A DNA stretch of 64,000 nt from Paramoeba atlantica (Eukaryota; Protista; Discosea), in contig CDRNVI010000049.1 of the NCBI GenBank assembly GCA_977017575.1, forward strand, positions 434,001-498,000. Reading direction: 5' to 3'. Below the pieces are notes generated by a model. The model made no database searches. It saw nothing but the letters and a program-made list of their open reading frames with translations, and was not told the DNA's origin. Positions within the stretch are counted from its first letter, which is position 1. The number at the start of each line of letters is the position of its first letter. The position numbers were made by a program, and so were the translations under genes. Shown piece after piece: positions 21,554-63,500 of this stretch.

Positions 21554-21618
21554 CAACTTTTATCACTCATCTATCAACTACTTTTATCACTCATCTATCA
21601 ACTACTTTTATCACTTAC
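21554..21618. repeat. Short tandem repeat, ~3 copies of acttttatcactcatctatcaact
   Basis: Directly visible tandem copies. Confidence 0.8.
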
Positions 21619-21762
21619 ACTACCGTCGCCCCCCCTCACATACACGAGTATACAATTACCTATCCTCGAAAAAGAGGAAATTTTCGAAAATTTACGAAAA
21701 AAGTGGAAATTTTGACCTTCGCAGATTCCGTATGTATGACGGAGTTTATCCGTCATACATAC

Positions 21763-21801
21763 AACCAACTGTATACAAGATACAGTTTCTGTACCTTGTT
21801 G
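21763..21801 (+). ncRNA. Spliced-leader (mini-exon) sequence, 39 nt
   Basis: AACCAACTGTATACAAGATACAGTTTCTGTACCTTGTTG is exactly 39 nt, has an AAC(C)AAC 5' end, the conserved euglenozoan ACAGTTTCTGTAC core and a TTG end, and is followed by a GT donor. Confidence 0.82.
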
Positions 21802-22268
21802 GTACATTTTCCTTTAGTTCATCTTTTCTTTCCCCGGCAACGGGCATAGTCTTACTGTTTATATGCCCGTTGCCGGCTGGCACTAAGGCCGAAACTGTCC
21901 CTCTTTCTCGTCGAAGCAGGGGACGCGCTTCCACCCCATCACCCCTCCCCGGCTCACTCTTTGAGTGAGCTTACTTCCCTCCCCGGATTTCTTCCTTTCG
22001 CGCCCTTTCCTTCCCGGGGAGCCATGCACCATGTTTGCCTCCCTTGAGCACCACTGGGCGTGGCTCTGCCTCGTCTTATCGCGAGGCAGCGGTCGGTAGC
22101 AGTGCGCCCCTCCGGCTGCGTAAAGAGAGGGCGAGTTGCCTGGGCCCCCTCTACCGACAGAGTCCGTGCTAATCCCCTTGGTGCGACATCCGTCATTACA
22201 GATTGTGCCGATGATATCGGCTGTCGTATCAAGGGCTGTATCTCTGCGCCAACGAGCGCATGAACATC
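21763..22268 (+). repeat. SL-headed structured repeat, copy 1 (full length, 506 bp)
   Basis: Highly similar to the reverse complement of 28019..28589; multiple long hairpins. Confidence 0.85.
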
Positions 22269-26945: not shown

Positions 26946-27562
26946 ACGTATTCTTTTTTTAGATTTCAAAATTGAGACAGCCACATGCACTGGCTCGTTA
27001 ATCTAAGCTATTTAATTTAAGGAATCAAAAACCAAACTCGGAAAAAAGAAATTATAAAAAAAACTCGTAACTATTTAAGAAACAGTTCGCTAAAGAAACA
27101 AATTCACACTATTCTAGAATTTCTACACTACTAATTTATTTCTTTTAAATAAACATTTTTTTTCACACTACTATTTTATTATCAATCATTATTATATTGG
27201 TGCCTCCCACATAGGCTCTTAATGATTGAGGGTGAAGAGTCGTGTCGAATTCACCATACAAATCAGTATTACTATTTAAGTCAAGTCTACGCAGGTGTTT
27301 TGGAAGGAAATCAAACAACACCAGACCACTAAATAGGTTTATCTGACATTCGAAGGCGTGGAGAGATGGGGGTAGGTGCTGTAAGTCAAGTGGTCCAGTG
27401 AAAAAGTTTTGCGCTATATTTAGATTTTCCATTCTCCTCGGTAAGCGACTAAGGACAACCTCCCCAGAAAGCTCATTTGAATGAATATCTAAAAGTGTCA
27501 AAGTTGAAGGCAATTCGGAGAGATCCACGTTTTGAACGAATTTGTTACTGTTCAAAGGTTAT

Positions 27563-28010
27563 GATCATACGCTCGTGGCGCAGAGATACGTCTCTCTGTG
27601 TGACGGCCGATACCATCAGCGCATGACCCGCATACGACGGGTGTCACACAGAGAGTGGAGTGCGAGGTAGGAGACGAGTCGCCCATCGGTCATGCTACAG
27701 CACGTATAGCCATGGTTCATGCTGCAACACGGTCAAGCCGTGGGTTCATGCTGTCAGATGGTCTATCGTGGATCATGATGCATCATGGGGAGGTCCGTTA
27801 CCGCCGCACTCGCTACAGCATGTAGGGAGAGAGGGGTGCAAGTTCGCATCCCCTATACACGCATACAACGTGCCCTCCCGCTGTAGCACGCCCAGTGGTC
27901 CTCAAGGGAGGCCACCATGGCGCATAGCTCCCGGGAGAAGAAAGCACGAGAAGTAGAGAGCCGGGGAGGGAAGAAAGCTCACTCGAAGAGAGCGAGCCGG
28001 GGAGGGGTGA
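27563..28010 (-). repeat. SL-repeat family copy 3 (divergent, lacks SL-proximal part)
   Basis: Shares GCGCAGAGATAC, ACGCCCAGTGGTCCTCAAGGGAGGCCACCATGGCGCAT and GAGCCGGGGAGGGGTGA blocks with copy 2. Helices are conserved with different sequence. Confidence 0.78.
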
Positions 28011-28018
28011 AGAGTTTT

Positions 28019-28589
28019 GATGTTCATGCGCTCGTTGGCGCAGAGATACAGCCCTTGATGCGACAGCCGATATCATCGGCACAATCCGTATTGACGGATG
28101 TCGCACCAAGGGGGTTTAGCTCGGACTCTGTCGGTAGAGGGGGTCCAGGCAACTCGCCCTCTCTTTACGCAGCCGGAGGGGCGCACTGCAACCGACTCGG
28201 TCCCAGTCGGTAGAGGTGGTCCAGGCAACTCACCACCTCTTTGCGCAGCCGGAGGGGCGCACTGCAACCGACCGCTGCCTCGCGATAATGCGAGGCAGAG
28301 CCACGCCCAGTGGTCCTCAAGGGAGGCCACCATGGCGCATGGCTCCCCGGGAAGAAAAGGGCGCGAAGGGAAGAAAGCCGGGGAGGGAAGAAAACCCACT
28401 CAAGGAGTGAGCCGGGGAGGGGTGATGGGGTGGAAGCGCGTCCCCTACTTCGCCGAGAAAGAGGGACAGTTTCGGCCTTAGTGCCGGCCGGCAACGGGCA
28501 TATAAAACAGTAAGATTATGCCCGTTGCCGGGGAAAGAAAAGATGAACTAAAGGGAAAATGTACCAACAAGGTACAGAAACTGTATCTT
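28019..28589 (-). repeat. SL-repeat family copy 2 (SL nt 15-39 retained, internal ~75-bp duplication)
   Basis: Reverse complement reads AAGATACAGTTTCTGTACCTTGTTG|GTAC... and matches copy 1. Confidence 0.85.
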
Positions 28590-29262
28590 TATTGCGAAGT
28601 GCCACCATTGCGTCAGGTAAATGCGATAAATTCATTTTTCCTGACAGTTCGTTGCTAGATATGTCAATTGCCTTCATCTCGGATGGCAATACATCGAGTG
28701 GTACACTTCCGGTAAGTTCGTTTCGCCATGCCCTAAATTCGCGTGTTGTGTCGCATAAATATTTCCATTGCAAGGATCCCCCAAGTTTCCTGTAACTCCA
28801 ACGAATATACCTTACTTGTGAATTATAACAGCTCACGCCGGTCCAATCGCAAGCAGGTGTCGACGAAGTCCAGGATGGATCCCAATTTGAAATGTTCTCG
28901 ACAAATCGTACAAGTTCATATTCCTGCGGTAAGTTCGCTCCCCGAACTTTACTCGGACGGTTCCCTACTGCATTGTGCTTATAGTCATCCGCTGCGTCGC
29001 AACACGAGGACAAAAGACAGAGCGTCGAAAACATGACAGAAGACATATAAAAGACTACTAATAGGACGATCGTGTTTTTCCCTGTTGCATCAGCAACAGT
29101 AATGTTAAAATTCTTTTTTAGCCACTACGTTACACTCGGCGGTTGTCTTCAACTTAAAAGTCACTCATGCTGAGCATGGAGTAGCAAAAGTAGAAAACAA
29201 AAGTGTGGGCGGAGGGAAAAGTATAAACAGTGCCCACCACTGTATATAGCGTATATACACAT

Positions 29263-31807: not shown

Positions 31808-31941
31808 TAATTTATTAATAATTTATTAATAATCTATTAATAATAATTATTATTACCGAACTGAATTATTAATAATCCTGCAGCTATGCTCCTAGGTGAC
31901 GTATCCGCTTTGGGCCGCTTTTTTCCACTTTTGCGAGGATA

Positions 31942-33387
31942 CAGGGGGGTAAATCAGATGCTGCGGGGGGTCTAAAAATTGCAAAACCCTTCAAATTTTG
32001 GAAAATGATAGCGCATTCGAGAGCTCTCGCAGAGTTCTATGTTTTTGCGCTATTTTCACCCCAAAAGAAAGCAATTTTGTTTATGGCATTTTTTAAAAAG
32101 TTTTTTTGTCCCTCTAAAATTTGCAGTTTTTCCCAAATTTTCTCATTTTTTTCGTTTTTTCTCCATTTCGTCTCAGTTTTATGCCGCGAAAGCGATCCCG
32201 TTCTATGCAGAACAAAAGATTTCTCTCCGATAGGGCGTACTCCTCCCCTGGGCACACCAAATATTCACATAGGATGCTTCTTGTAAAAGATTACGAGAAT
32301 ACAAATTCCTATGGTGCCACTTGCCGAAGAGAAGGCGTCCACCACAGCACTGTCAAGTTGTGGGTGAAACGCTTTGAGGAAACCGGGGACGTTGAACGTT
32401 CCACACCCCCTCGCGAACGCACTGTGGCGACACCCGGGCTTCTTGATGCGTGCCACGAGATTATTGACACGGCCAACACGTCAAGCACACGCGGTTGTCC
32501 CTCCTGGAATTTTATACTTCGAGAGGTCAGGAAACGAGGTTTCACCTGCAGCAGGCCAACTGTAGTAAATTTTTTGAAGGACGCAGGGATAATCCAACGT
32601 TCTTTTTCGAAAGGCCTTTTTTTAACTGAATCTCATAAGGCCAAGCGACTAACCTTTGCATTGAAAATGCAGAAGTGGTCTGTCGCACAGCTTCGTCACA
32701 TTATTTGGTGTGACGAAAAAAATTCACTTGCCAGCTTGGACAGGAAAGCCGCTCGTACATTTGCAGAGCAAGTGACCCCCCGAAACCACCTCTAAAAGCT
32801 TCGCAAAAGTGGTTTGGGGGGGATGGAGTAAACGTTTGGATGGGTTTCTTAAAGTTTCTTAAAGCGTCATAGCGGGGCCCGGGTTGCTATGGATAATGCT
32901 CCTTGCCACAATGGCAGTTTTAGAACCTTTAAAGAAAACGAAGTCGTTGTTTTGGACTTTCCCCCAAAATCCCCAGATCTTAACCCCATTGAAAACATTT
33001 GGGAAATTATGGATGCCTTTATTAAAAATGGTACAAACCCAGAAAATAGGACTGAACTCTTGTTTTCTATTGAAAGAGCGGTTGATTACATTAAAACAGA
33101 TGGTCATGACATGCTCATTAACACTTTAAAAAGCATGCCGCGGCGTTTCGACATAGTAGTAGAAAAAAAAGGAGAAAGTTGTAATTATTAGTCGTCTAAA
33201 ACCTTTCTCATTTTTGCATTTTGACGTTTTTGGGCTTCTTGTCAGTTGAACACCCCCCTATACCCCGGGAAACTGCCTTTTCTAAAACATAGAACTCTTC
33301 GAGAGCTCTCGAATACGCTATCATTTTCCAAAATTGGAAAGGTTTTGCAATTTTTAGACCCCCCGCAGCATCTGATTTACCCCCCTG
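31942..33387 (+). mobile_element. Tc1/IS630-like element, ~105-bp TIRs, TA TSD, defective DD32E transposase (~32183..33191)
   Basis: TA-CAGGGG...CCCCTG-TA ends; HTH (TVKLWVKRFEETG), CDEK, MDNAPCH and SPDLNPIENIW motifs; internal deletion relative to 60859..62406. Confidence 0.92.
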
Positions 33388-33706
33388 TATGTGAGGGGGG
33401 GTGACAGTAGTCAATTCTAATCCATCGATCAATAGGGTTTAACCCGCTTACGACGTGCAAGAAAAACGGTAATCAAGAATCGTCTAAACAGCAAATTTCG
33501 GTAATCAAAGTGTTCCAAAAGGGCATACAAAGGACATATAAAAAGGCAAGATCTTTTACGTGATAACTCAGTTCATACTTTTGCTCTATGCACAGGATAT
33601 GCTATGAATGGGGAGAGACCTGTAGATAGTACTTTTCCACTAAAACTTGCGCTTTGGATTCCCCGTTTTCATCATTTACAGCTGAAATATTACGAAAAGA
33701 TTCTCT

Positions 33707-42551: not shown

Positions 42552-43289
42552 GGCGTCCCTGACGCAGTACGATACTACAACGCTCTGCTCATTCGACCAA
42601 GAAAAGCCCACCGGTTGGACGGTGCTAACGTTAGGTGTATTGCAATGGTTGTTTAACTACCGCTGTACCCTCGATTATTAAAAAAAGTGAACAAATTTTC
42701 CACCCCCACGTGGGGGTGACCCCCCCTGGTATCCGCAGGATGGGTCCGCCAAGTTCGGAATTTTCACGAAAAAAAAGTTGGAAAAAATTCTAGGCGGGAT
42801 CCTAGGCGCTCCCACCCAGAGTCACCCCTCTAAGCACAATGTATTATTAACGTGTATTACATGCCGAAACCCTCGTTTAAGTCCTGCAGAATAACAATTC
42901 CAGTAACATGATTTCTGTATCTTCCGATTGAAGCAAAAAATATTAAGAAGCTAAGGAAGAAAAAATTGACGAAAGATAAACTCCGGATTGCTCCGATGGG
43001 TCACTGGCAAGCCAGACCCTTCACAGATAGATATGGAAGTTTCGAGGCCGAAGTCCTCTACCTGTTTTCGTTAGTACAAGGCGGCAACAACGTGCTACCA
43101 CCAACCCGTTGCGTCGACGAACCCAAGACAATCTTCAAACGTTATCATTCCTGCAGCTACGTAGTATTCCTGTAGCCGTTAACATTCCCCCCCGGAATGT
43201 TAAACCGGACTGTGGTTTAAAATCCCGGTATGACGGCGTCGTCTTCACCAAGAAAATTGCACCCAGAACCTTTGTGCATCGTTCTTTGT

Positions 43290-43409
43290 GCGCCATCTGT
43301 GTCCCCCCTTGAAGACCACTGGGCGTGGCTCTGCCTCGCCTTACCCCGATGCAACGGTCGGTTGCAGTGCACCCCTCCGGCTGCATAAAGAGGTGGTAAG
43401 TTGCCTGGG
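43290..43409 (+). repeat. SL-repeat family copy 4 (internal fragment)
   Basis: cccttgaagaccactgggcgtggctctgcctcg...cccctccggctgc.taaagag...agttgcctggg matches the middle of copy 1. Confidence 0.75.
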
Positions 43410-43429
43410 GAATAATCTGACCTCCCCTC

Positions 43430-49329: not shown

Positions 49330-52300
49330 TCCGCGACAGACTTGCTGTTGGCGTGAAGAAACATTTGCATTGAAACGTTTCCGGGTCATGGACGCTTGCC
49401 TAGAATTGTACTTGTGTGTCATCATTGAAAGCACAGAATCACAATATGTGACAACCGGCGGGACAAACAGATAATGTTGCGCAAGAGGGTAGACTTCCGG
49501 AAAATCGTAGCGCCCTACTTTCTCCCACCATTCAATGTCCGTACAAGCTCCTCCAGGCCACTTTTAATTTTCGTGTGTCACATAAGTTTCCCATGCCGCC
49601 TCTGTGCAGTGAAACATGGGCGCATTATTCTTTAGAAGATCGTTTGCTCGAGCACAAGTGATCGGCGCATAATTTTGCGTTCGTGTCGTCCATATGATGA
49701 ATGTAGGGCTTAGCCAACGAACGTCTTTCCAAAATGGAGTTGCGTGATTTTTGTTGAGACGACTCTCGTGGTGCTGGAGAGCAGCGGCGAGTGGAGGATT
49801 TGAAGGCCCTTCCTTACGAAGCATACTAAGTGTGCTTTCAACACACGTCGCAATGGCGACGTTGTTCTCGTCAGAAAAGAGATTTGGGGAAGTACGCAGA
49901 GGTTCCAATCGCTTTAAAAAAGCCTTCCCCTCAGACATGATTGCGTCAACTGCGCCAGGAACTTTGAGAATGTCATAGCATGAGCATATGGACGCAGGAG
50001 GAATGGGTGTAGGTTTGCTAACTATGTGGGTTACAAATTTAGCAATTGTTGGCAATTCTGTTGATATATACTCAACCCACGTGAATTTATCCGCTATCCA
50101 GCGCGTGACACCACCAAGTTTAGGTGTCGTACGTACGCGTTCACGCTTAGCTTCCTCTTGCAATTTTTGTGCCATGGGGATAACTCTGGAAAGAGAAGTT
50201 AGGGCATTCCGCAAGGTCGCGAGTGCTTGTTCCTTTGAAGTCTCGTCCAATTGCTTTGATCCAAGTATTCCATACCACTGGAACAAGGTTTCTTCGGCGG
50301 ACTGCGAAGTTTCGTCAAACTCAGTAAGTCGAACTTCAAGAGCAACACCAGCATACTCCGCTCGTCGAGTTCCTTGACCATGAAATGCTTGAGTGTAGTA
50401 CTTTCGTAGCTGGACAAGAAGAATATCTTCATAATCCTTGGATGCGTCTTTCGCAACGTTGTTGAGAAGATGCCCAATGCACGGAATTAGGACAATGTGG
50501 GGATGTGAAGCCTGGAAATTTGTCACAAAGTCATTCCAATCTGCAGCTCCAAGAGGAACAATGCTCTCAAATACTTTTAGTAACACACCACTCGCTTCAT
50601 AGCGAGACCAACATGGTTCACAGCTACATGGTTCACTGCGCATCCATCGACTATGAGATACGCCAGTTTGGATAGACGAGCTCCTTCCAGACAGTGTTGC
50701 AATTCACGTATAACAATTTCGGCGGTATCCTTACCACTGAAAGCGCCATACTTCGGGTGATGCATCGGTGGCATGAGCCATTGATGATGTCCCACATAGA
50801 GAACCGCTACAAGAACATGTTCGCGGAGTACAGGGTCGATGTCTGCATCAATTGCTAGACCAAAAAATGCATACTCGTCAACAGTACGTCTTATTCGTCC
50901 CCAGAGTTGTTCCGCTAGGTATTGCACGTCTGCTTTGAGCACACGGGCGTCTTTCTGAAGAACTTGAATAGCTGTCTCAGTGGACATAACGGGTCGGTGC
51001 TGCTCATACAGGGGTGAAAACTTCCATCTGGGGGGGTCTAAAATTTGTAAAAACTTTTCAATTTTGTAAAATAATAGCGCATTCGAGAGCTCTCGCAGAG
51101 TTGTATGTCTTCGTACTGGTAGCTTTTAACATATCAAAGTAGAACTACAAATGCCGAATAGGTCAAAAACTCGAATTGTCACTTGAAAAATGATACAAAA
51201 AAGTTGAAAAGTAACGTTTTCTCCCCCCAAAAAGATTGTTAGTAACCCCTGTTAGTATCCGCAATGTGCACCGTTCTTTTCTACAATGATTCTACAACGC
51301 TTTCTGAAGCTTTTTAGCGTATTCTCAAATTTGGATATTTGTTCCGTCTTAAGTTTATCATAGGAATCATGAATTGCGGAGAGTAATTGTTGTTGATTTT
51401 TGGGTTGAATTTGGTCCTTTGTCCCGTCCATTATTGACCAAAGATTTTCTATGGGGTTTAGATCAGGGGATCGTGCTGGCCATCGGAGCCAAGAATAACC
51501 CTTTTCTTGGGCCGCGGCACGAGCCTTATTATGTGCCGGGCAATTGTCCATCACTATTGTGGCCCGATGTCTCCTTAAATATTGGAACAGACCCCCCCCT
51601 TTTTTTCATGGCTTCATAAAAAATTTGTCCCTTTACAGTTACTTTGTTTCCTTGAGAATCATGGGTAGGAAAGACGTGTAAATGAAACCCATGCTTTAAG
51701 CTCACCCCATCCAAACCATAATACCTTCTCCACCATGATAGGGTTCTAATTCCCCTGTTTGTTCTTTGGGGGGGGTCAGATTTTCGGCAAAGGTACGTGG
51801 GTCGGGTGGATCTTTTGCACGTAAATTTTTTTTCGTCGCAGAAAATAATATTTCCCAGCGCAGCGTCGCTCCACTGTAGCATTTCAGTGGCAAATTGCAC
51901 TCTGCGCTCCTTATGATTATTAGATAAGAAAGGGGTCTTTAAAGCTGTTCTGAGCACAATTTTTTCTTTTGAGTTTTTCAACATGTTCCTTAGGGATGTT
52001 AGTGAACATATGAAGCCACGTCGCTTTACCTCTCTCCAGAGCTCGCTCCAAGTGGAGATACCATAAGGAAGGTCACGATAAGCGTCATCAATAAGCTTTA
52101 AAGATACTTTCATAAGATCAGAGGTGGTGACCCTAGGTTGGCGCGTAGGGGATGGACTGGCCACGTCGCCAGTGCAATTAAATCTTTCCACCCAGAGTTT
52201 CACAGTTCCCTCGTGGACACCAAAATTTTGGGCAGTCCGGGAATAAGACTCTGTTTTCTCAAAGTCCGCCACAAGAAGCATCCTGTGACTTTCCTTAATC

Positions 52301-52758
52301 TTCCCTGGTGAGGCATAGGAGCGTGCTCTCAAAACACCACGGGAAGTCCATGAGCGAACTCGCTTTTGAGGCATAAAATGGGGAAAAACAAAAAATTGCC
52401 ATACTTTCACAAGAAAAAAAAATTATTTTTTTGTCATTAGATTAAATCTTTCAAGTCGAGCGTTCCGAATACGCCAAAGACATACAACTCTGCGAGAGCT
52501 CTCCAAAGCGCTATTATTTTACAAAATTGAGCAAATTTTACAAATTTTAGACCCCCCCAGATGGAAGTTTTCACCCCTGTATGTTTTGATAAATTTCAAG
52601 AACGAAGATACGGGGAAGGAAGTAGTTGAGAAAAGCAGAGGAAGTACCACATGTGCAAATATTTCCGGTGTCCCCGAATTAGTGTCCACTGTCCCAATGT
52701 TATTATCGAGAGGAGGTGGTGGTGGTGGTGGACGACACCACTTTTGATGATTGCTCAA
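49330..52758 (-). pseudogene. hAT-superfamily transposase interrupted by a Tc1-like insertion
   Basis: GLAID, LIVDGCAVN, CIGHLLNNV, GVTRW and a C-terminal WW..R segment. Removing 51009..52579 and one TA joins ...FLKFIKT-Y-EQHRPVMSTET in frame. Confidence 0.78.
51009..52579 (-). mobile_element. Tc1/IS630-like element, ~100-bp TIRs, TA TSD, DD32E transposase (~52377 to 51252)
   Basis: TA-CAGGGG...CCCCTG-TA ends; CDEKKF, GGEGIMVWMG, MDNCPAH and SPDLNPIENLW motifs; three frameshifts, all in C/G homopolymer runs. Confidence 0.92.
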
Positions 52759-60538: not shown

Positions 60539-63500
60539 TCATGGATGGCTGAAGAGCTCATCATGGCGTTTCCTCTTTGCACCGCGACCCCTAGAGCCAT
60601 AAGTGCGTGTTGGAGAAAACCTGCATGATCCTCCGTAAATCTCCCCCATCTGCGCAGGAACGACAAGGTCGTTAAAAAAATGAAAAAAATTCATACTGCG
60701 AGATGAAGCCATTTTTTCGTGCTGATTCACTTTTTGCTCTTCGGCCTTCTCAAGGGTGCTTCCTGGGAACTTCGCTTCCTTCTCCACATAAGAAGGAGCA
60801 AGAGGATTTACGACGGTGACATCTATCAAAGTCAGTTGGTCCCCTAGTTGAAAACATACAGGGGTGCAAATCAGATGCTGGGGGGGGTCTAAAATTAGCA
60901 ATGTTTGCGCAATTTTGGAAAATAATAGCGCATTCGAGAGCTCTCGCAGAGATCTATGTATTTGGATAGGCGGTTTCCCGGGGTGTAAGGGGGTGGTCAA
61001 CTGAGGAGAAGCCCAAAAACGTCAAAATGCAAAAAATGAATGAAAATTTTTGTACGTTCAATAATTACAACTTTCCCCTTTTTTTTCTACTACTATGTCG
61101 AAACGCCGCGGCATGCTGTTTATAAAGTGTTTATGAGCACGTCATGACCATCTGTTTTAATGTAATCAACCGCCTTTTCAATAGAATACAAAAGTTCAGT
61201 CCTATTTTCTGGGTTTGTACCATCTTTAATAAAGGTGTCCATGATGTCCCAAATGTTTTCAATAGGGTTAAGATCTGGGGATTTTGGGGGAAGTCTAAAA
61301 CAACGACTTGGTTTTCTCGAAAGGTTTTAAAGGTGCCATTGTGACAAGGAGCATTATCCATTGCAACTCTAGTACCGCTATGACGCTTCAAGAAACCCCC
61401 CCTTTTTGTCATAGCTGCTTTAAAAACATTTGAAGTAATCGTAACTTTCCCATTTCTGTCCCTGTCGGGAAAGACGTGATAAAAAACTCCATAAATAAGG
61501 CTTATCCCATCCAAACGTTTATTCCATCCCCCCCAAACCATTTTTGCGCAGCTTTTAGGGGTGGCTTCGGGGGGTCACTCGCTCGGCAAATGTAAGAACG
61601 GCTTTCGCGCCCAAGTTGACAAGTGAACTTTTTTTCGTCACACCAAATAATGTGACGAAGCTGTGCGACGGACCACTTCTGCATTTTCAGTGCAAATGTT
61701 AGTCGCTTGGCCTTGTGAACTTCAGTTAAGAACAGGCCTTTAGAAAAAGATCGTTGGATCATCCCTTCGTCCTTCAAAAAATTTACTAGGGTCGGCCTGC
61801 TGCAGGAGAAACCCCTTTTCCTAACCTCACGAAGAATAAAACTCCACGAGGGACAACCTCGCGCACTTGTCGCGTTGGACGCGTCAATAATTTCACGGCA
61901 TGCCTCAAGAAGCTCCGGCGTTGTCACTGCGTTCTCGAGGAGGCGTAGCACGTTCAACATCCCCGGTTTCCTCAAATCGCTTAACCCACAACTTAACAGT
62001 GCTGTCGTGGATGCCTTGTCTTTGGCAAGTGACACTGTAGGAGTTTGTATTCTCGTAATCTTTAACGAGAAGCATCCTGTGTGAATATTTTGTGTGCCCC
62101 GGGGGTTCATGTGATCTATCGGATAAGCTTTTACTGTTTTGCTTAGAGCGGGATCGCTTTTGCGGCATAATAGTGAGCTGAAAAACAAAAAAACACGGAA
62201 AAAACTGCAAAAATTGAAAAATCTGCAACTTTTAGGGGGGTAAAAAACCTTTAAAAAAAATATCTTTTTCAAATTTGTTTTCTTTTAACGTGGTAATGGC
62301 GCCAAAACATAGATCTCTGCGAGAGCTCTCGAATGCGCTATTATTTTCCAAAATTGCGCAAACATTGCTAATTTTAGACCCCCCCAGCATCTGATTTGCA
62401 CCCCTGTATGTCCGGTCCTCGGCCGTTGTTGATCCTTGAGGCGGCCTAAACCACCCATAAGAAGGGAAGCGCAGTTAATGATCGCTGAATCGACTTTGGC
62501 ATTCGCTCTCTCCGTGATCTCTGGATGATGACATCTGAGTATGTGATTCCACCGCGGCGCACCAGTGTCGCAGGACGGCCCAAGCGCATTGTTTGGAAAG
62601 AAGCGGAATCCTTGACAGGAATTCTTCGAATTTTGGTACTTGGTTCAGAGTCCAATTAGTTTCACGAGTAGGTTCGCAAGCGACGTACGCATCCAACAAT
62701 TTTTGACCAAAAAGGCTCTGTTGGACCCCCAAGGACTCCAAAAGTTGAAACTGGCACTGGTCTCGCGTGCTCACACAACACTTTGTGCGATTGATGAGCA
62801 AACCAAGGCGTCCGAAGCGCTCTTCGAGGATGACGTATGCCCGTTTTACGAGTGTAGGGGGGCCAAGGAACGCAACATCGTCAAGGTAAGCACACAAAAT
62901 TATATCTGGACCAAGATCTTCTACAGTTGAGCGCAGAGTTTCGTGTATCGCTAAAGAAAAAAGTAAGGGTCCCATGGGATCTCCCTGCTTGACTCCGCAA
63001 AAACTTTTCATTGGGACATCGTTGAGCATAAGGCAGCTTGGGGTTCCGTAAGAGAACAGCGTAATACCCATCAGTTCCTCCAAATCGGGTGTTTTTCGCA
63101 GTCCCTCTATTATAAATTTTCTCTGAAGTGAATTGAAAGCGTTTGTTATGTCCAAAGTTCCCAGTATGCTTTCCTTGTTACTTAGGAAAGATTGCCGAAG
63201 AGTCCAGATAATTCTTTCTCACCCATTCGGTGAGCCTGCACCGTGCTGAATATCGCCAAAAATAGCCGGAAGGGATGGCTGTACTCTACGGATGATGGTG
63301 ATTCCAGCCAGCTTCAGAAACGCTTCTCCCATCGCAATGGGGCGACAGGCCGGGAGTTCTTCGGTAGGAGGAGATTTCTCCTCACGGATTAGCAAGAGTC
63401 GGGATGTTGCCAAAGCTTGTCGGAGATCTAGAAATAAATTGTTCTTCAGAATGCCTTCCAGGAGCCATTGTAACCATTCGGAGACTTCTGGGATGTCCAG

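Follow-up and report, generated by a model that had tools for sequence, protein, structure and literature searches.

What is a repeat of about 500 nucleotides (nt) that opens with a piece of spliced leader (SL): an SL RNA gene of unusual length, a structured cellular RNA, or a mobile element? The question is raised by four copies of such a repeat in a 64,000-nt stretch of the Paramoeba atlantica assembly GCA_977017575.1 (contig CDRNVI010000049.1, positions 434,001 to 498,000 of the forward strand), here called the window. A preliminary description, made from the letters of the window, had reported a full 39-nt SL exon at the start of the first copy together with compensated helices in the body, and had offered several interpretations. 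We searched the whole assembly of 45.7 Mb and concluded that the repeat is very probably a non-autonomous, non-coding family of retroposons resembling short interspersed nuclear elements (SINEs) of a kinetoplastid-type protist, with a relic of the SL as its head and, at its 3' end, a module of the type carried by a long interspersed nuclear element (LINE). A SINE-like retroposon, distinct from an ordinary SL gene, was thus retained from the earlier interpretations, on the grounds of dispersal, 5' truncation, a module layout matching that behind an R2-like reverse-transcriptase gene, and the existence of empty sites for copy 1; an SL-capped cellular RNA, a long SL transcript and a spacer of the SL array were given up.

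A dispersed family with a fixed 3' end

All four copies that had been noticed in the window were found again, and their coordinates could be refined as follows (a slash within a motif marks a junction; the array exon is that of the tandem SL genes described below).

21763/21777-22268, plus strand: copy 1 (whole), subfamily A, short form with a single 76-nt unit
21763-21776, plus strand: 5' extra of copy 1, 14 nt (AACCAACTGTATAC); inserted, excluded as the true 5' part of the SL
21777-21801, plus strand: SL relic of copy 1, SL nt 14-38 (AAGATACAG...CCTTGTTG), identical to the 3' 25 nt of the array exon
21802-22174, plus strand: body of copy 1, containing GTAC, the internal acceptor and an anti-SL segment
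21817/21818, plus strand: internal acceptor of copy 1, ...CCTTTAG/TTCATC
21891-21898, plus strand: internal anti-SL segment of copy 1, GAAACTGT
22175-22268, plus strand: 3' module of copy 1, a covariance-model match of 119 bits, with covariation and a defined fold
28015-28592, minus strand: copy 2, subfamily A, long form; head from SL nt 11 (ATAAAG), tail GAACATC followed by AAAA
27556-28014, minus strand: copy 3, subfamily B, 5'-truncated and without the first ~160 nt; tail GATCATAACCT
~43280-43412, plus strand: copy 4, a decayed internal fragment of the body with neither head nor 3' module

The 76-nt unit is tandemly duplicated in copy 2 (28120-28195 and 28196-28271), and copy 3 directly abuts the A tail of that copy. 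Copy 4 is 86% identical to positions 22038-22144 of copy 1. The SINE region of the window held no open reading frame (ORF) with a Pfam domain.

The genome-wide search for copies that had been advised gave a family dispersed in hundreds of copies. With copy 1 as the query for subfamily A, there were 473 first-look candidates, and all 40 of the 40 that were scored were 90-96% identical to it. The 3' part of copy 3, the query for subfamily B, gave 148; here the 40 scored matches (40/40) were 98-100% identical over the last 338 nt, and subfamily B must therefore be very young. Full-length subfamily B copies carry the same SL relic head. The family comprises about five subfamilies, in which full-length alignment showed a common 5' core with exchanged centres and tails; a full copy consists of an SL-derived head, the core of ~300 nt, a variable centre and a 3' module of ~100 nt. 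Elements were 491-659 nt long and contained the 76-nt unit one to three times.

The ends of the copies proved informative. Among 26 independent subfamily A copies the 3' end was invariant, reading ...GCGCATGAACATC and then AAA or AAAA, while the 5' ends varied within the SL-like stretch; fragments consisting of only the last 95-165 nt, which are 5'-truncated copies, also occurred. A fixed 3' end, a variable 5' end and 3'-only fragments are marks of target-primed reverse transcription. In several A copies the terminal 10-14 nt were repeated.

Motifs of leucine-rich repeat (LRR) genes flanked 5 of the 26 independent A copies, always in sense orientation, and the same sense insertion into LRR genes was seen for window copies 2 and 3, for one B copy and for the intact LINE described below. 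Other copies lay in microsatellites, other repeats and the tails of other elements. We considered whether the element could be an introner, spliced harmlessly from the transcripts of LRR and other host genes. Its consistent sense orientation in LRR genes (the five A copies, the window copy, and loci L075 and L099) and the GT donor 25 nt inside the element would fit. However, there is no AG at or near the 3' end (...GAACATC AAAA), excision from the GT donor to any internal AG leaves stop codons or frameshifts, many copies lie outside genes or in microsatellites, and the 5'-truncated copies are without the donor. We judged an introner highly improbable.

Rfam returned no family for the window at the gathering threshold, nor for the elements at E <= 1. 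No head derived from a tRNA, 7SL or 5S gene with a promoter for RNA polymerase III (Pol III) was matched, and the sense strand has TTTT runs within its first 100 nt. In a metagenome scan the 20-nt junction gave a single chance match, in an unrelated contig.

The 3' module is under structural selection

In copy 1, the module has a 13-bp outer stem (22175-22187 with 22223-22235) around two hairpins, followed downstream by the spacer CTGTATCT (22236-22243), a terminal hairpin (22244-22262) and the tail GAACATC. Overall, a Y-shaped stem holds two inner hairpins and is followed by a spacer with TATCT at its end, a terminal hairpin and a subfamily-specific end motif with or without a short A run.

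Compensatory changes between copies 2 and 3, reported in the preliminary description, were borne out: the 13-bp helix differs by four two-sided changes and one G-U to G-C change, and the inner ATCCG/CGGAT becomes ACCCG/CGGGT as stated. When the modules of subfamilies A and B were aligned with MAFFT, without fitting to a structure, and the structure taken from A was imposed, 99% of cells were paired, compared with 28-47% in slid controls, and two-sided changes affected five pairs, of which the 13-bp stem holds four. A covariance model of A and B gave 150 scored matches of about six sequence types, with three kinds of end motif (GAACATC-AAAA, GATCATAACCT and GATAAACAA). In 21 distinct modules, 95.5% of cells were paired (slid controls, 30-44%) and 13 of 29 pairs had changed on both sides, in an alignment that was made by the covariance model and so leans toward the model structure. 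None of 500 shuffles equalled this result.

The reported bias toward G-U on the leader-sense strand was also upheld, with 43 G-U against 7 A-C module cells, or 26 against 7 once a single fixed G-U column was removed. This excess points to an RNA of the leader-sense strand. By these sequence comparisons the SINE is indeed under structural selection, for which the best explanation is a retrotransposition signal residing in the 3' module, plus pairing between head and body, and not a host RNA function.

An R2-like LINE carries a module of the same layout

On contig C60 we found an intact ORF of 1609 aa with RVT_1 (2.8e-31) and zf-RVT domains and no domain match to an apurinic/apyrimidinic (AP) endonuclease (Exo_endo_phos). 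Solved R2 proteins align to residues 860-1594 of the 1609, that is, through to the C-terminus, and the predicted protein thus appears to have an R2-like C-terminal region comprising the zinc knuckle and nuclease part. Within ~100 nt after this ORF lies a module of matching layout (35.5 bits, E = 3.5e-6) that is almost unrelated in sequence. It ends in CATGAATC followed by AAAA, where subfamily A ends in CATGAACATC followed by AAAA, and the two have the motif CATGAA(T/C)(AT)C in common. The LINE too lies within an LRR gene and has a SINE copy joined to its tail. We also observed that its 5' end (L099, 5560-5700) consists of short ATAAAGAT(T/C) pieces in succession that repeat parts of SL nt 11-18, and that this run stands directly after an LRR motif of the host gene.

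The module would act as a cis signal by which the reverse transcriptase of an R2-like LINE takes up the RNA in target-primed reverse transcription, and such recognition would explain the selection on its helices. SINE subfamilies may have exchanged tails in order to use different LINE partners.

An alternative is that the hairpins act in DNA, with the element being a DNA transposon that moves, for example, as single-stranded DNA or by rolling circle. Both strands do surpass shuffled sequence in folding by a wide margin (z = -7.3 and -6.1). The asymmetry between G-U and A-C cells nevertheless favours one RNA strand, neither terminal inverted repeats nor a transposase partner were found, and 5' truncation, A tails, repeated end motifs and a LINE with a matching 3' module layout all speak against it. 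A DNA transposon can hardly be credited here.

True SL genes and the head of copy 1

Using a pattern taken from the longer head of other retroelements (CTTTAACGATAAAG...), we traced the true SL genes to contigs C97, C107, C11 and C74, where they form tandem arrays that repeat every ~2.56 kb. The array exon is AACTTTAACGATAAAGATACAGTTTCTGTACCTTGTTG (38 nt), beginning AACTTTAACGATAAAG, and the intron begins GTATGAGAAG; downstream of the exon come GTATGAGAAGCTTCG..., a hairpin rich in G+C and a run of T. Measured against this exon, copy 1 does not begin with the full 39-nt SL exon previously ascribed to it: the match covers only SL nt 14-38 (from AAGATACAG), plus GTA. The 39-mer itself occurs once in the assembly, even when 2-3 mismatches are allowed. 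Beyond the exon, GTA is all that the SL gene and the SINE have in common. The body was tried as an SL intron or array spacer and rejected, its score against the SL intron and flank being no better than that of shuffled sequence; the earlier possibility that it is the spacer of the main SL array fell with this, the real SL genes and their flanks being unrelated to the body beyond GTA.

The 14 nt in front of the relic were compared with the site of insertion, which is an unrelated dispersed repeat:

left part 21602-21762 (wider extent from 21540), resuming at ~22269 (to 22345), plus strand: host repeat of copy 1

This repeat has 14 other matches in the genome, and seven paralogous empty sites delimit the insertion. 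The empty sites read ...CCGTCATACAT GGCAATGGGTCAAAAAAATC..., while the window reads ...CCGTCATACAT, AC, AACCAACTGTATAC and the SINE, with the repeat resuming after GAACATC. Compared with the empty site, copy 1 suggests a repeat of no more than 4 nt (ACAT), with a small deletion of the target. As the first 14 nt are absent from the empty sites and differ from the array exon, they are inserted material; AACCAACTGTATAC had been tried as part of the host repeat, which the empty sites rule out. Within it, CTGTAT is an inverted copy of the adjacent ATACAG, and at the corresponding point in copy L113 there is a partial duplication of the leader. Given this inversion and duplication, the sequence suggests that template jumps produced the 5' junction of copy 1.

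Could copy 1 nevertheless be a functional gene, encoding an SL RNA that is variant or unusually long, with the other copies as its pseudogenes? It is the only copy with a 39-nt stretch that starts with AAC and ends in TTG/GT, and L036 likewise begins AACCAAC, 38 nt before the junction. Yet copy 1 sits in a dispersed repeat whose paralogues are without the insertion; it has no upstream sequence in common with L036 and the SL arrays; its first 14 nt are unlike the array exon, and the assembly holds no gene starting with AACCAAC; and it has several TTTT runs on the sense strand, no Sm-type layout and no Rfam match. We give this possibility almost no weight.

The AACCAAC start was seen in both L036 (C69:217417, minus strand) and window copy 1, in each case 38-39 nt before the exon end. 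It differs from the start of the array exon (AACTTT...) and resembles canonical euglenozoan leaders. No gene for a leader of the AACCAAC type was found in the assembly, and the start may be chance filler or the trace of a second leader variant that is older, minor or extinct.

Retroposed copies of whole SL RNAs were found at L057 (C6:27087) and L069 (C83:133027). Both have the exon from nt 3, the complete intron as far as GGGGCTT, an A run and unique flanks, from which it follows that the LINE machinery copies unspliced SL RNA too. A related element (tail GATAAACAAGG) was seen inside the SL arrays, at L081/L082 (C11:4181-4286 and C74:104547-104652) and C24:266711; it lies there in opposite orientation to the SL genes and is repeated along with the array.

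Origin of the leader head

Across 34 independent copies the SINE heads begin anywhere from SL nt 3 to nt 23, with 27 of the 34 starting at nt 9-14 and 12 at nt 11. In unrelated retroelement families the heads are nearly complete, beginning at SL nt 3, and differing sequences follow precisely after the exon end. Near-complete heads on differing sequences indicate trans-spliced templates, and neither SL genes nor template switching onto whole SL RNA. Further copies have the leader joined to the first AG acceptor of the element itself (CCTTTAG/TTCATC): there are 13 exact SL/TTCATC copies and 4 with one mismatch, from at least two parental variants, TTCATCT... and TTCATCC.... Their sequences indicate that SINE transcripts do undergo trans-splicing before being copied back into the genome.

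In kinetoplastids every Pol II transcript is trans-spliced, and the leader head would have entered the family by way of trans-spliced template RNAs; its variable length would come from 5' truncation at integration. For the starts at nt 11 and the retained SL/GTAC junction one may think of microhomology between the A-rich ATAAAG and target ends, of RNA starting or being processed near nt 11, or of template switching guided by homology.

A different origin deserves consideration, namely that the head descends as DNA from an SL RNA gene (exon plus donor), in the way that other heads derive from 5S, tRNA or snRNA genes, and serves as a promoter, processing signal or structural element. The SL gene and the SINE alike have GTA after TTG, and a GTACC..GGTAC hairpin spans the junction much as stem-loop I does in SL RNAs. 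Furthermore, the SINE heads start from about nt 11, compared with nt 3 in LINE families, and the relic does not vary between subfamilies that differ by 10-20% in the adjoining body. Against such a descent, the likeness to the SL intron and flank stops after 3 nt, other retroelement families have the exon alone, joined to unrelated sequences, and the SL/TTCATC copies indicate trans-splicing onto SINE RNA. A few SINE heads start at nt 3-8, which a relic beginning at nt 11 could not supply, and true retroposed SL RNAs (L057 and L069) look different, with exon, complete intron and A tail. We therefore consider descent from an SL gene unlikely, and prefer acquisition of the head through trans-spliced RNA.

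At L005 (C23:162100-162180) three partial, decayed leader heads (AAAGATACAGTTTCTTAC..., AAAGATACAGTTTATTACC... and AGATACAGTTTATTAC...) stand in tandem upstream of a SINE copy.

Pairing between head and body

It had been proposed that the 3' end can pair with the SL. We found that CTGTATCT (22236-22243) is the exact complement of AGATACAG in the head, and that the pairing is used in the fold of the whole element. Together with GAAACTGT (21891-21898), this makes two 8-nt segments of the body that complement the head exactly; in 5000 dinucleotide shuffles, 3.6% had one such complement and 0.08% had two (P about 0.001). A consensus fold of nine subfamily representatives contained both anti-leader pairings, and the internal anti-leader segment varied only from A to G, which keeps G-U pairs. 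GTAC in the body also closes a 5-bp hairpin with GTACC of the SL. Since the head is invariant, true covariation for the head-body pairing is absent, and as TATCT is the one part of the 3' segment that all modules share, the LINE-linked ones included, its complementarity may derive in part from the module.

The head would probably have been retained for pairing with the two anti-leader segments of the body. More specifically, the SL may have been made part of the functional RNA fold of the retroposon, with GAAACTGT and CTGTATCT either clamping the head in a ring-like fold or capturing SL RNA in trans; we offer this as a tentative proposal that could easily prove wrong. If true, pairing with the SL would explain both the unchanged head across subfamilies and the starts at about leader nt 11, and the propagation of a mobile element would depend on base-pairing to the universal mRNA leader. 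In the papers searched we found no description of a mobile element that depends on pairing to an mRNA leader.

Evidence that does not fit

Several of our results count against an SL-headed retroposon family served by an R2-like LINE. No regular target-site duplication was found among the 26 A copies. The module of the intact LINE is only distantly related to the SINE modules. A closer likeness was found behind a degenerate LINE with a zf-RVT ORF (C49:21000-27800), where the following 95 nt are 92% identical to the subfamily A tail. Since a LINE-type terminal hairpin stands before these 95 nt and 3' fragments of similar size occur elsewhere, they may represent a truncated SINE nested there, and we downgraded this module as clean proof of a shared tail. 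To the bias of the covariance-model alignment mentioned above must be added that covariation is carried by few independent lineages (A-like, B-like and LINE).

As to the head, genomic copies have no AG before GTAC, so that trans-splicing cannot simply recreate SL/GTAC from a daughter copy, and the contrast between LINE-type heads, which begin at SL nt 3, and the SINE peak at nt 11 is not predicted by the model. Finally, public sequencing runs, available as assembled contigs that break at the repeat, provided no empty allele and no bridging record, and the sole possible RNA run covers almost none of the stretch, a result with no bearing on expression.

Comparison with known systems

SINE heads are known from tRNA, 7SL, 5S and snRNA genes, and a structured 3' tail common to a SINE and its 'stringent' LINE is known from eel UnaSINE1/UnaL2 and from CR1- and RTE-tailed SINEs. 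The present elements resemble SINEs of the UnaSINE1/UnaL2 type in being short, non-coding and of high copy number and in ending with a LINE-type 3' stem-loop and a short terminal repeat, and they resemble CORE and V-SINEs in bearing different LINE-type tails on one conserved core. Unlike LINE-tailed SINEs, they have an SL relic head in place of one from tRNA, 7SL or 5S, no recognisable Pol III promoter, and a partner that is R2-like and not an AP-endonuclease LINE.

The R2 3' untranslated region (UTR) and the R2-dependent non-autonomous elements of Drosophila (SIDE) are an established system. Our family has in common with these a fold that is kept more than the sequence, an R2-like LINE, repeated end motifs, variable 5' junctions and an apparent lack of regular target-site duplication. 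In contrast to R2 and SIDE, it is not specific for ribosomal DNA, its targets being a single point within the LRR coding motif as well as many sites elsewhere; nor is it an internally deleted LINE, since only ~100 nt are LINE-like, by layout and end motif.

Among trypanosomatids, CRE1/CRE2, SLACS and CZAR are LINEs that insert into SL RNA genes (PMC12278014). They too are kinetoplastid LINEs, with restriction-like endonuclease, linked to the SL, but there the SL is the target, whereas here it belongs to the 5' end of the element itself, and the sites occupied in the window are an LRR gene and another repeat. The 5' Pr77 signature of ingi/L1Tc is also found in RIME, NARTc and SIDER, whose transcripts are unspliced (PMC2323293, PMC8190864). 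Like our elements, they are non-autonomous partners of kinetoplastid LINEs in polycistronic units; unlike them, our elements have the LINE-common part at the 3' end and an SL relic at the 5' end. The nearest analogue is provided by dinoflagellate retrogenes with relict SLs, where a DNA copy of the 5' leader marks a reverse-transcribed, trans-spliced RNA (PMC5585692, PMC12014239). The 5' leader copy is the likeness; those, however, are retrocopies of host genes, whereas here the relic is kept across the subfamilies of a mobile family and sequences complementary to it are present.

For kinetoplastids we found no SINE or LINE family headed by an SL relic in the papers searched, and no match for the leader sequence. 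The SL relic would be a new kind of SINE head, and the family would show retroelement RNAs of the host organism passing through the trans-splicing pathway. It raises the question of how a leader head is kept though the splice acceptor is lost at each insertion. The family would also lend itself, as a series of naturally covarying sequences, to the study of the RNA signal that R2-like reverse transcriptases read.

Host loci and other elements of the window

Copies 2 and 3 interrupt a gene in the window:

27163-29046, minus strand: small LRR gene with a hydrophobic N-terminus

Its N-terminal ORF, from 29046 to 28516, runs into the SINE, and the C-terminal part extends from 27555 to 27163. The flanks of the two copies rejoin as ...ALR/LNSNKF..., a regular LRR motif, and copy 2 lies in sense orientation within the gene. 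The family appears to be a recent source of gene disruption in a family of secreted-LRR genes.

The host repeat of copy 1 has a short tandem array on one side (units of ~24-29 nt, TTTTATCACTCATCTATCAACTAC) and repeated GCCAACAATAG motifs on the other. A perfect 13-bp hairpin is found exactly at the point of insertion, and only in the window copy of this repeat.

The 5S rRNA genes were surveyed as well, as a possible route to the SL genes. The 47 that were scored all had equal scores and lie 10-100 kb apart on a set of small contigs (C137-C182); no SL core was present near 5S rRNA at the six loci examined.

The window also contains three elements of ~1.4-1.5 kb (31936-33392, 51002-52583 and 60853-62387) with terminal inverted repeats of ~100 nt that are 94-99% complementary. 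They are mutually related and look like copies of a miniature inverted-repeat transposable element or of a DNA transposon.

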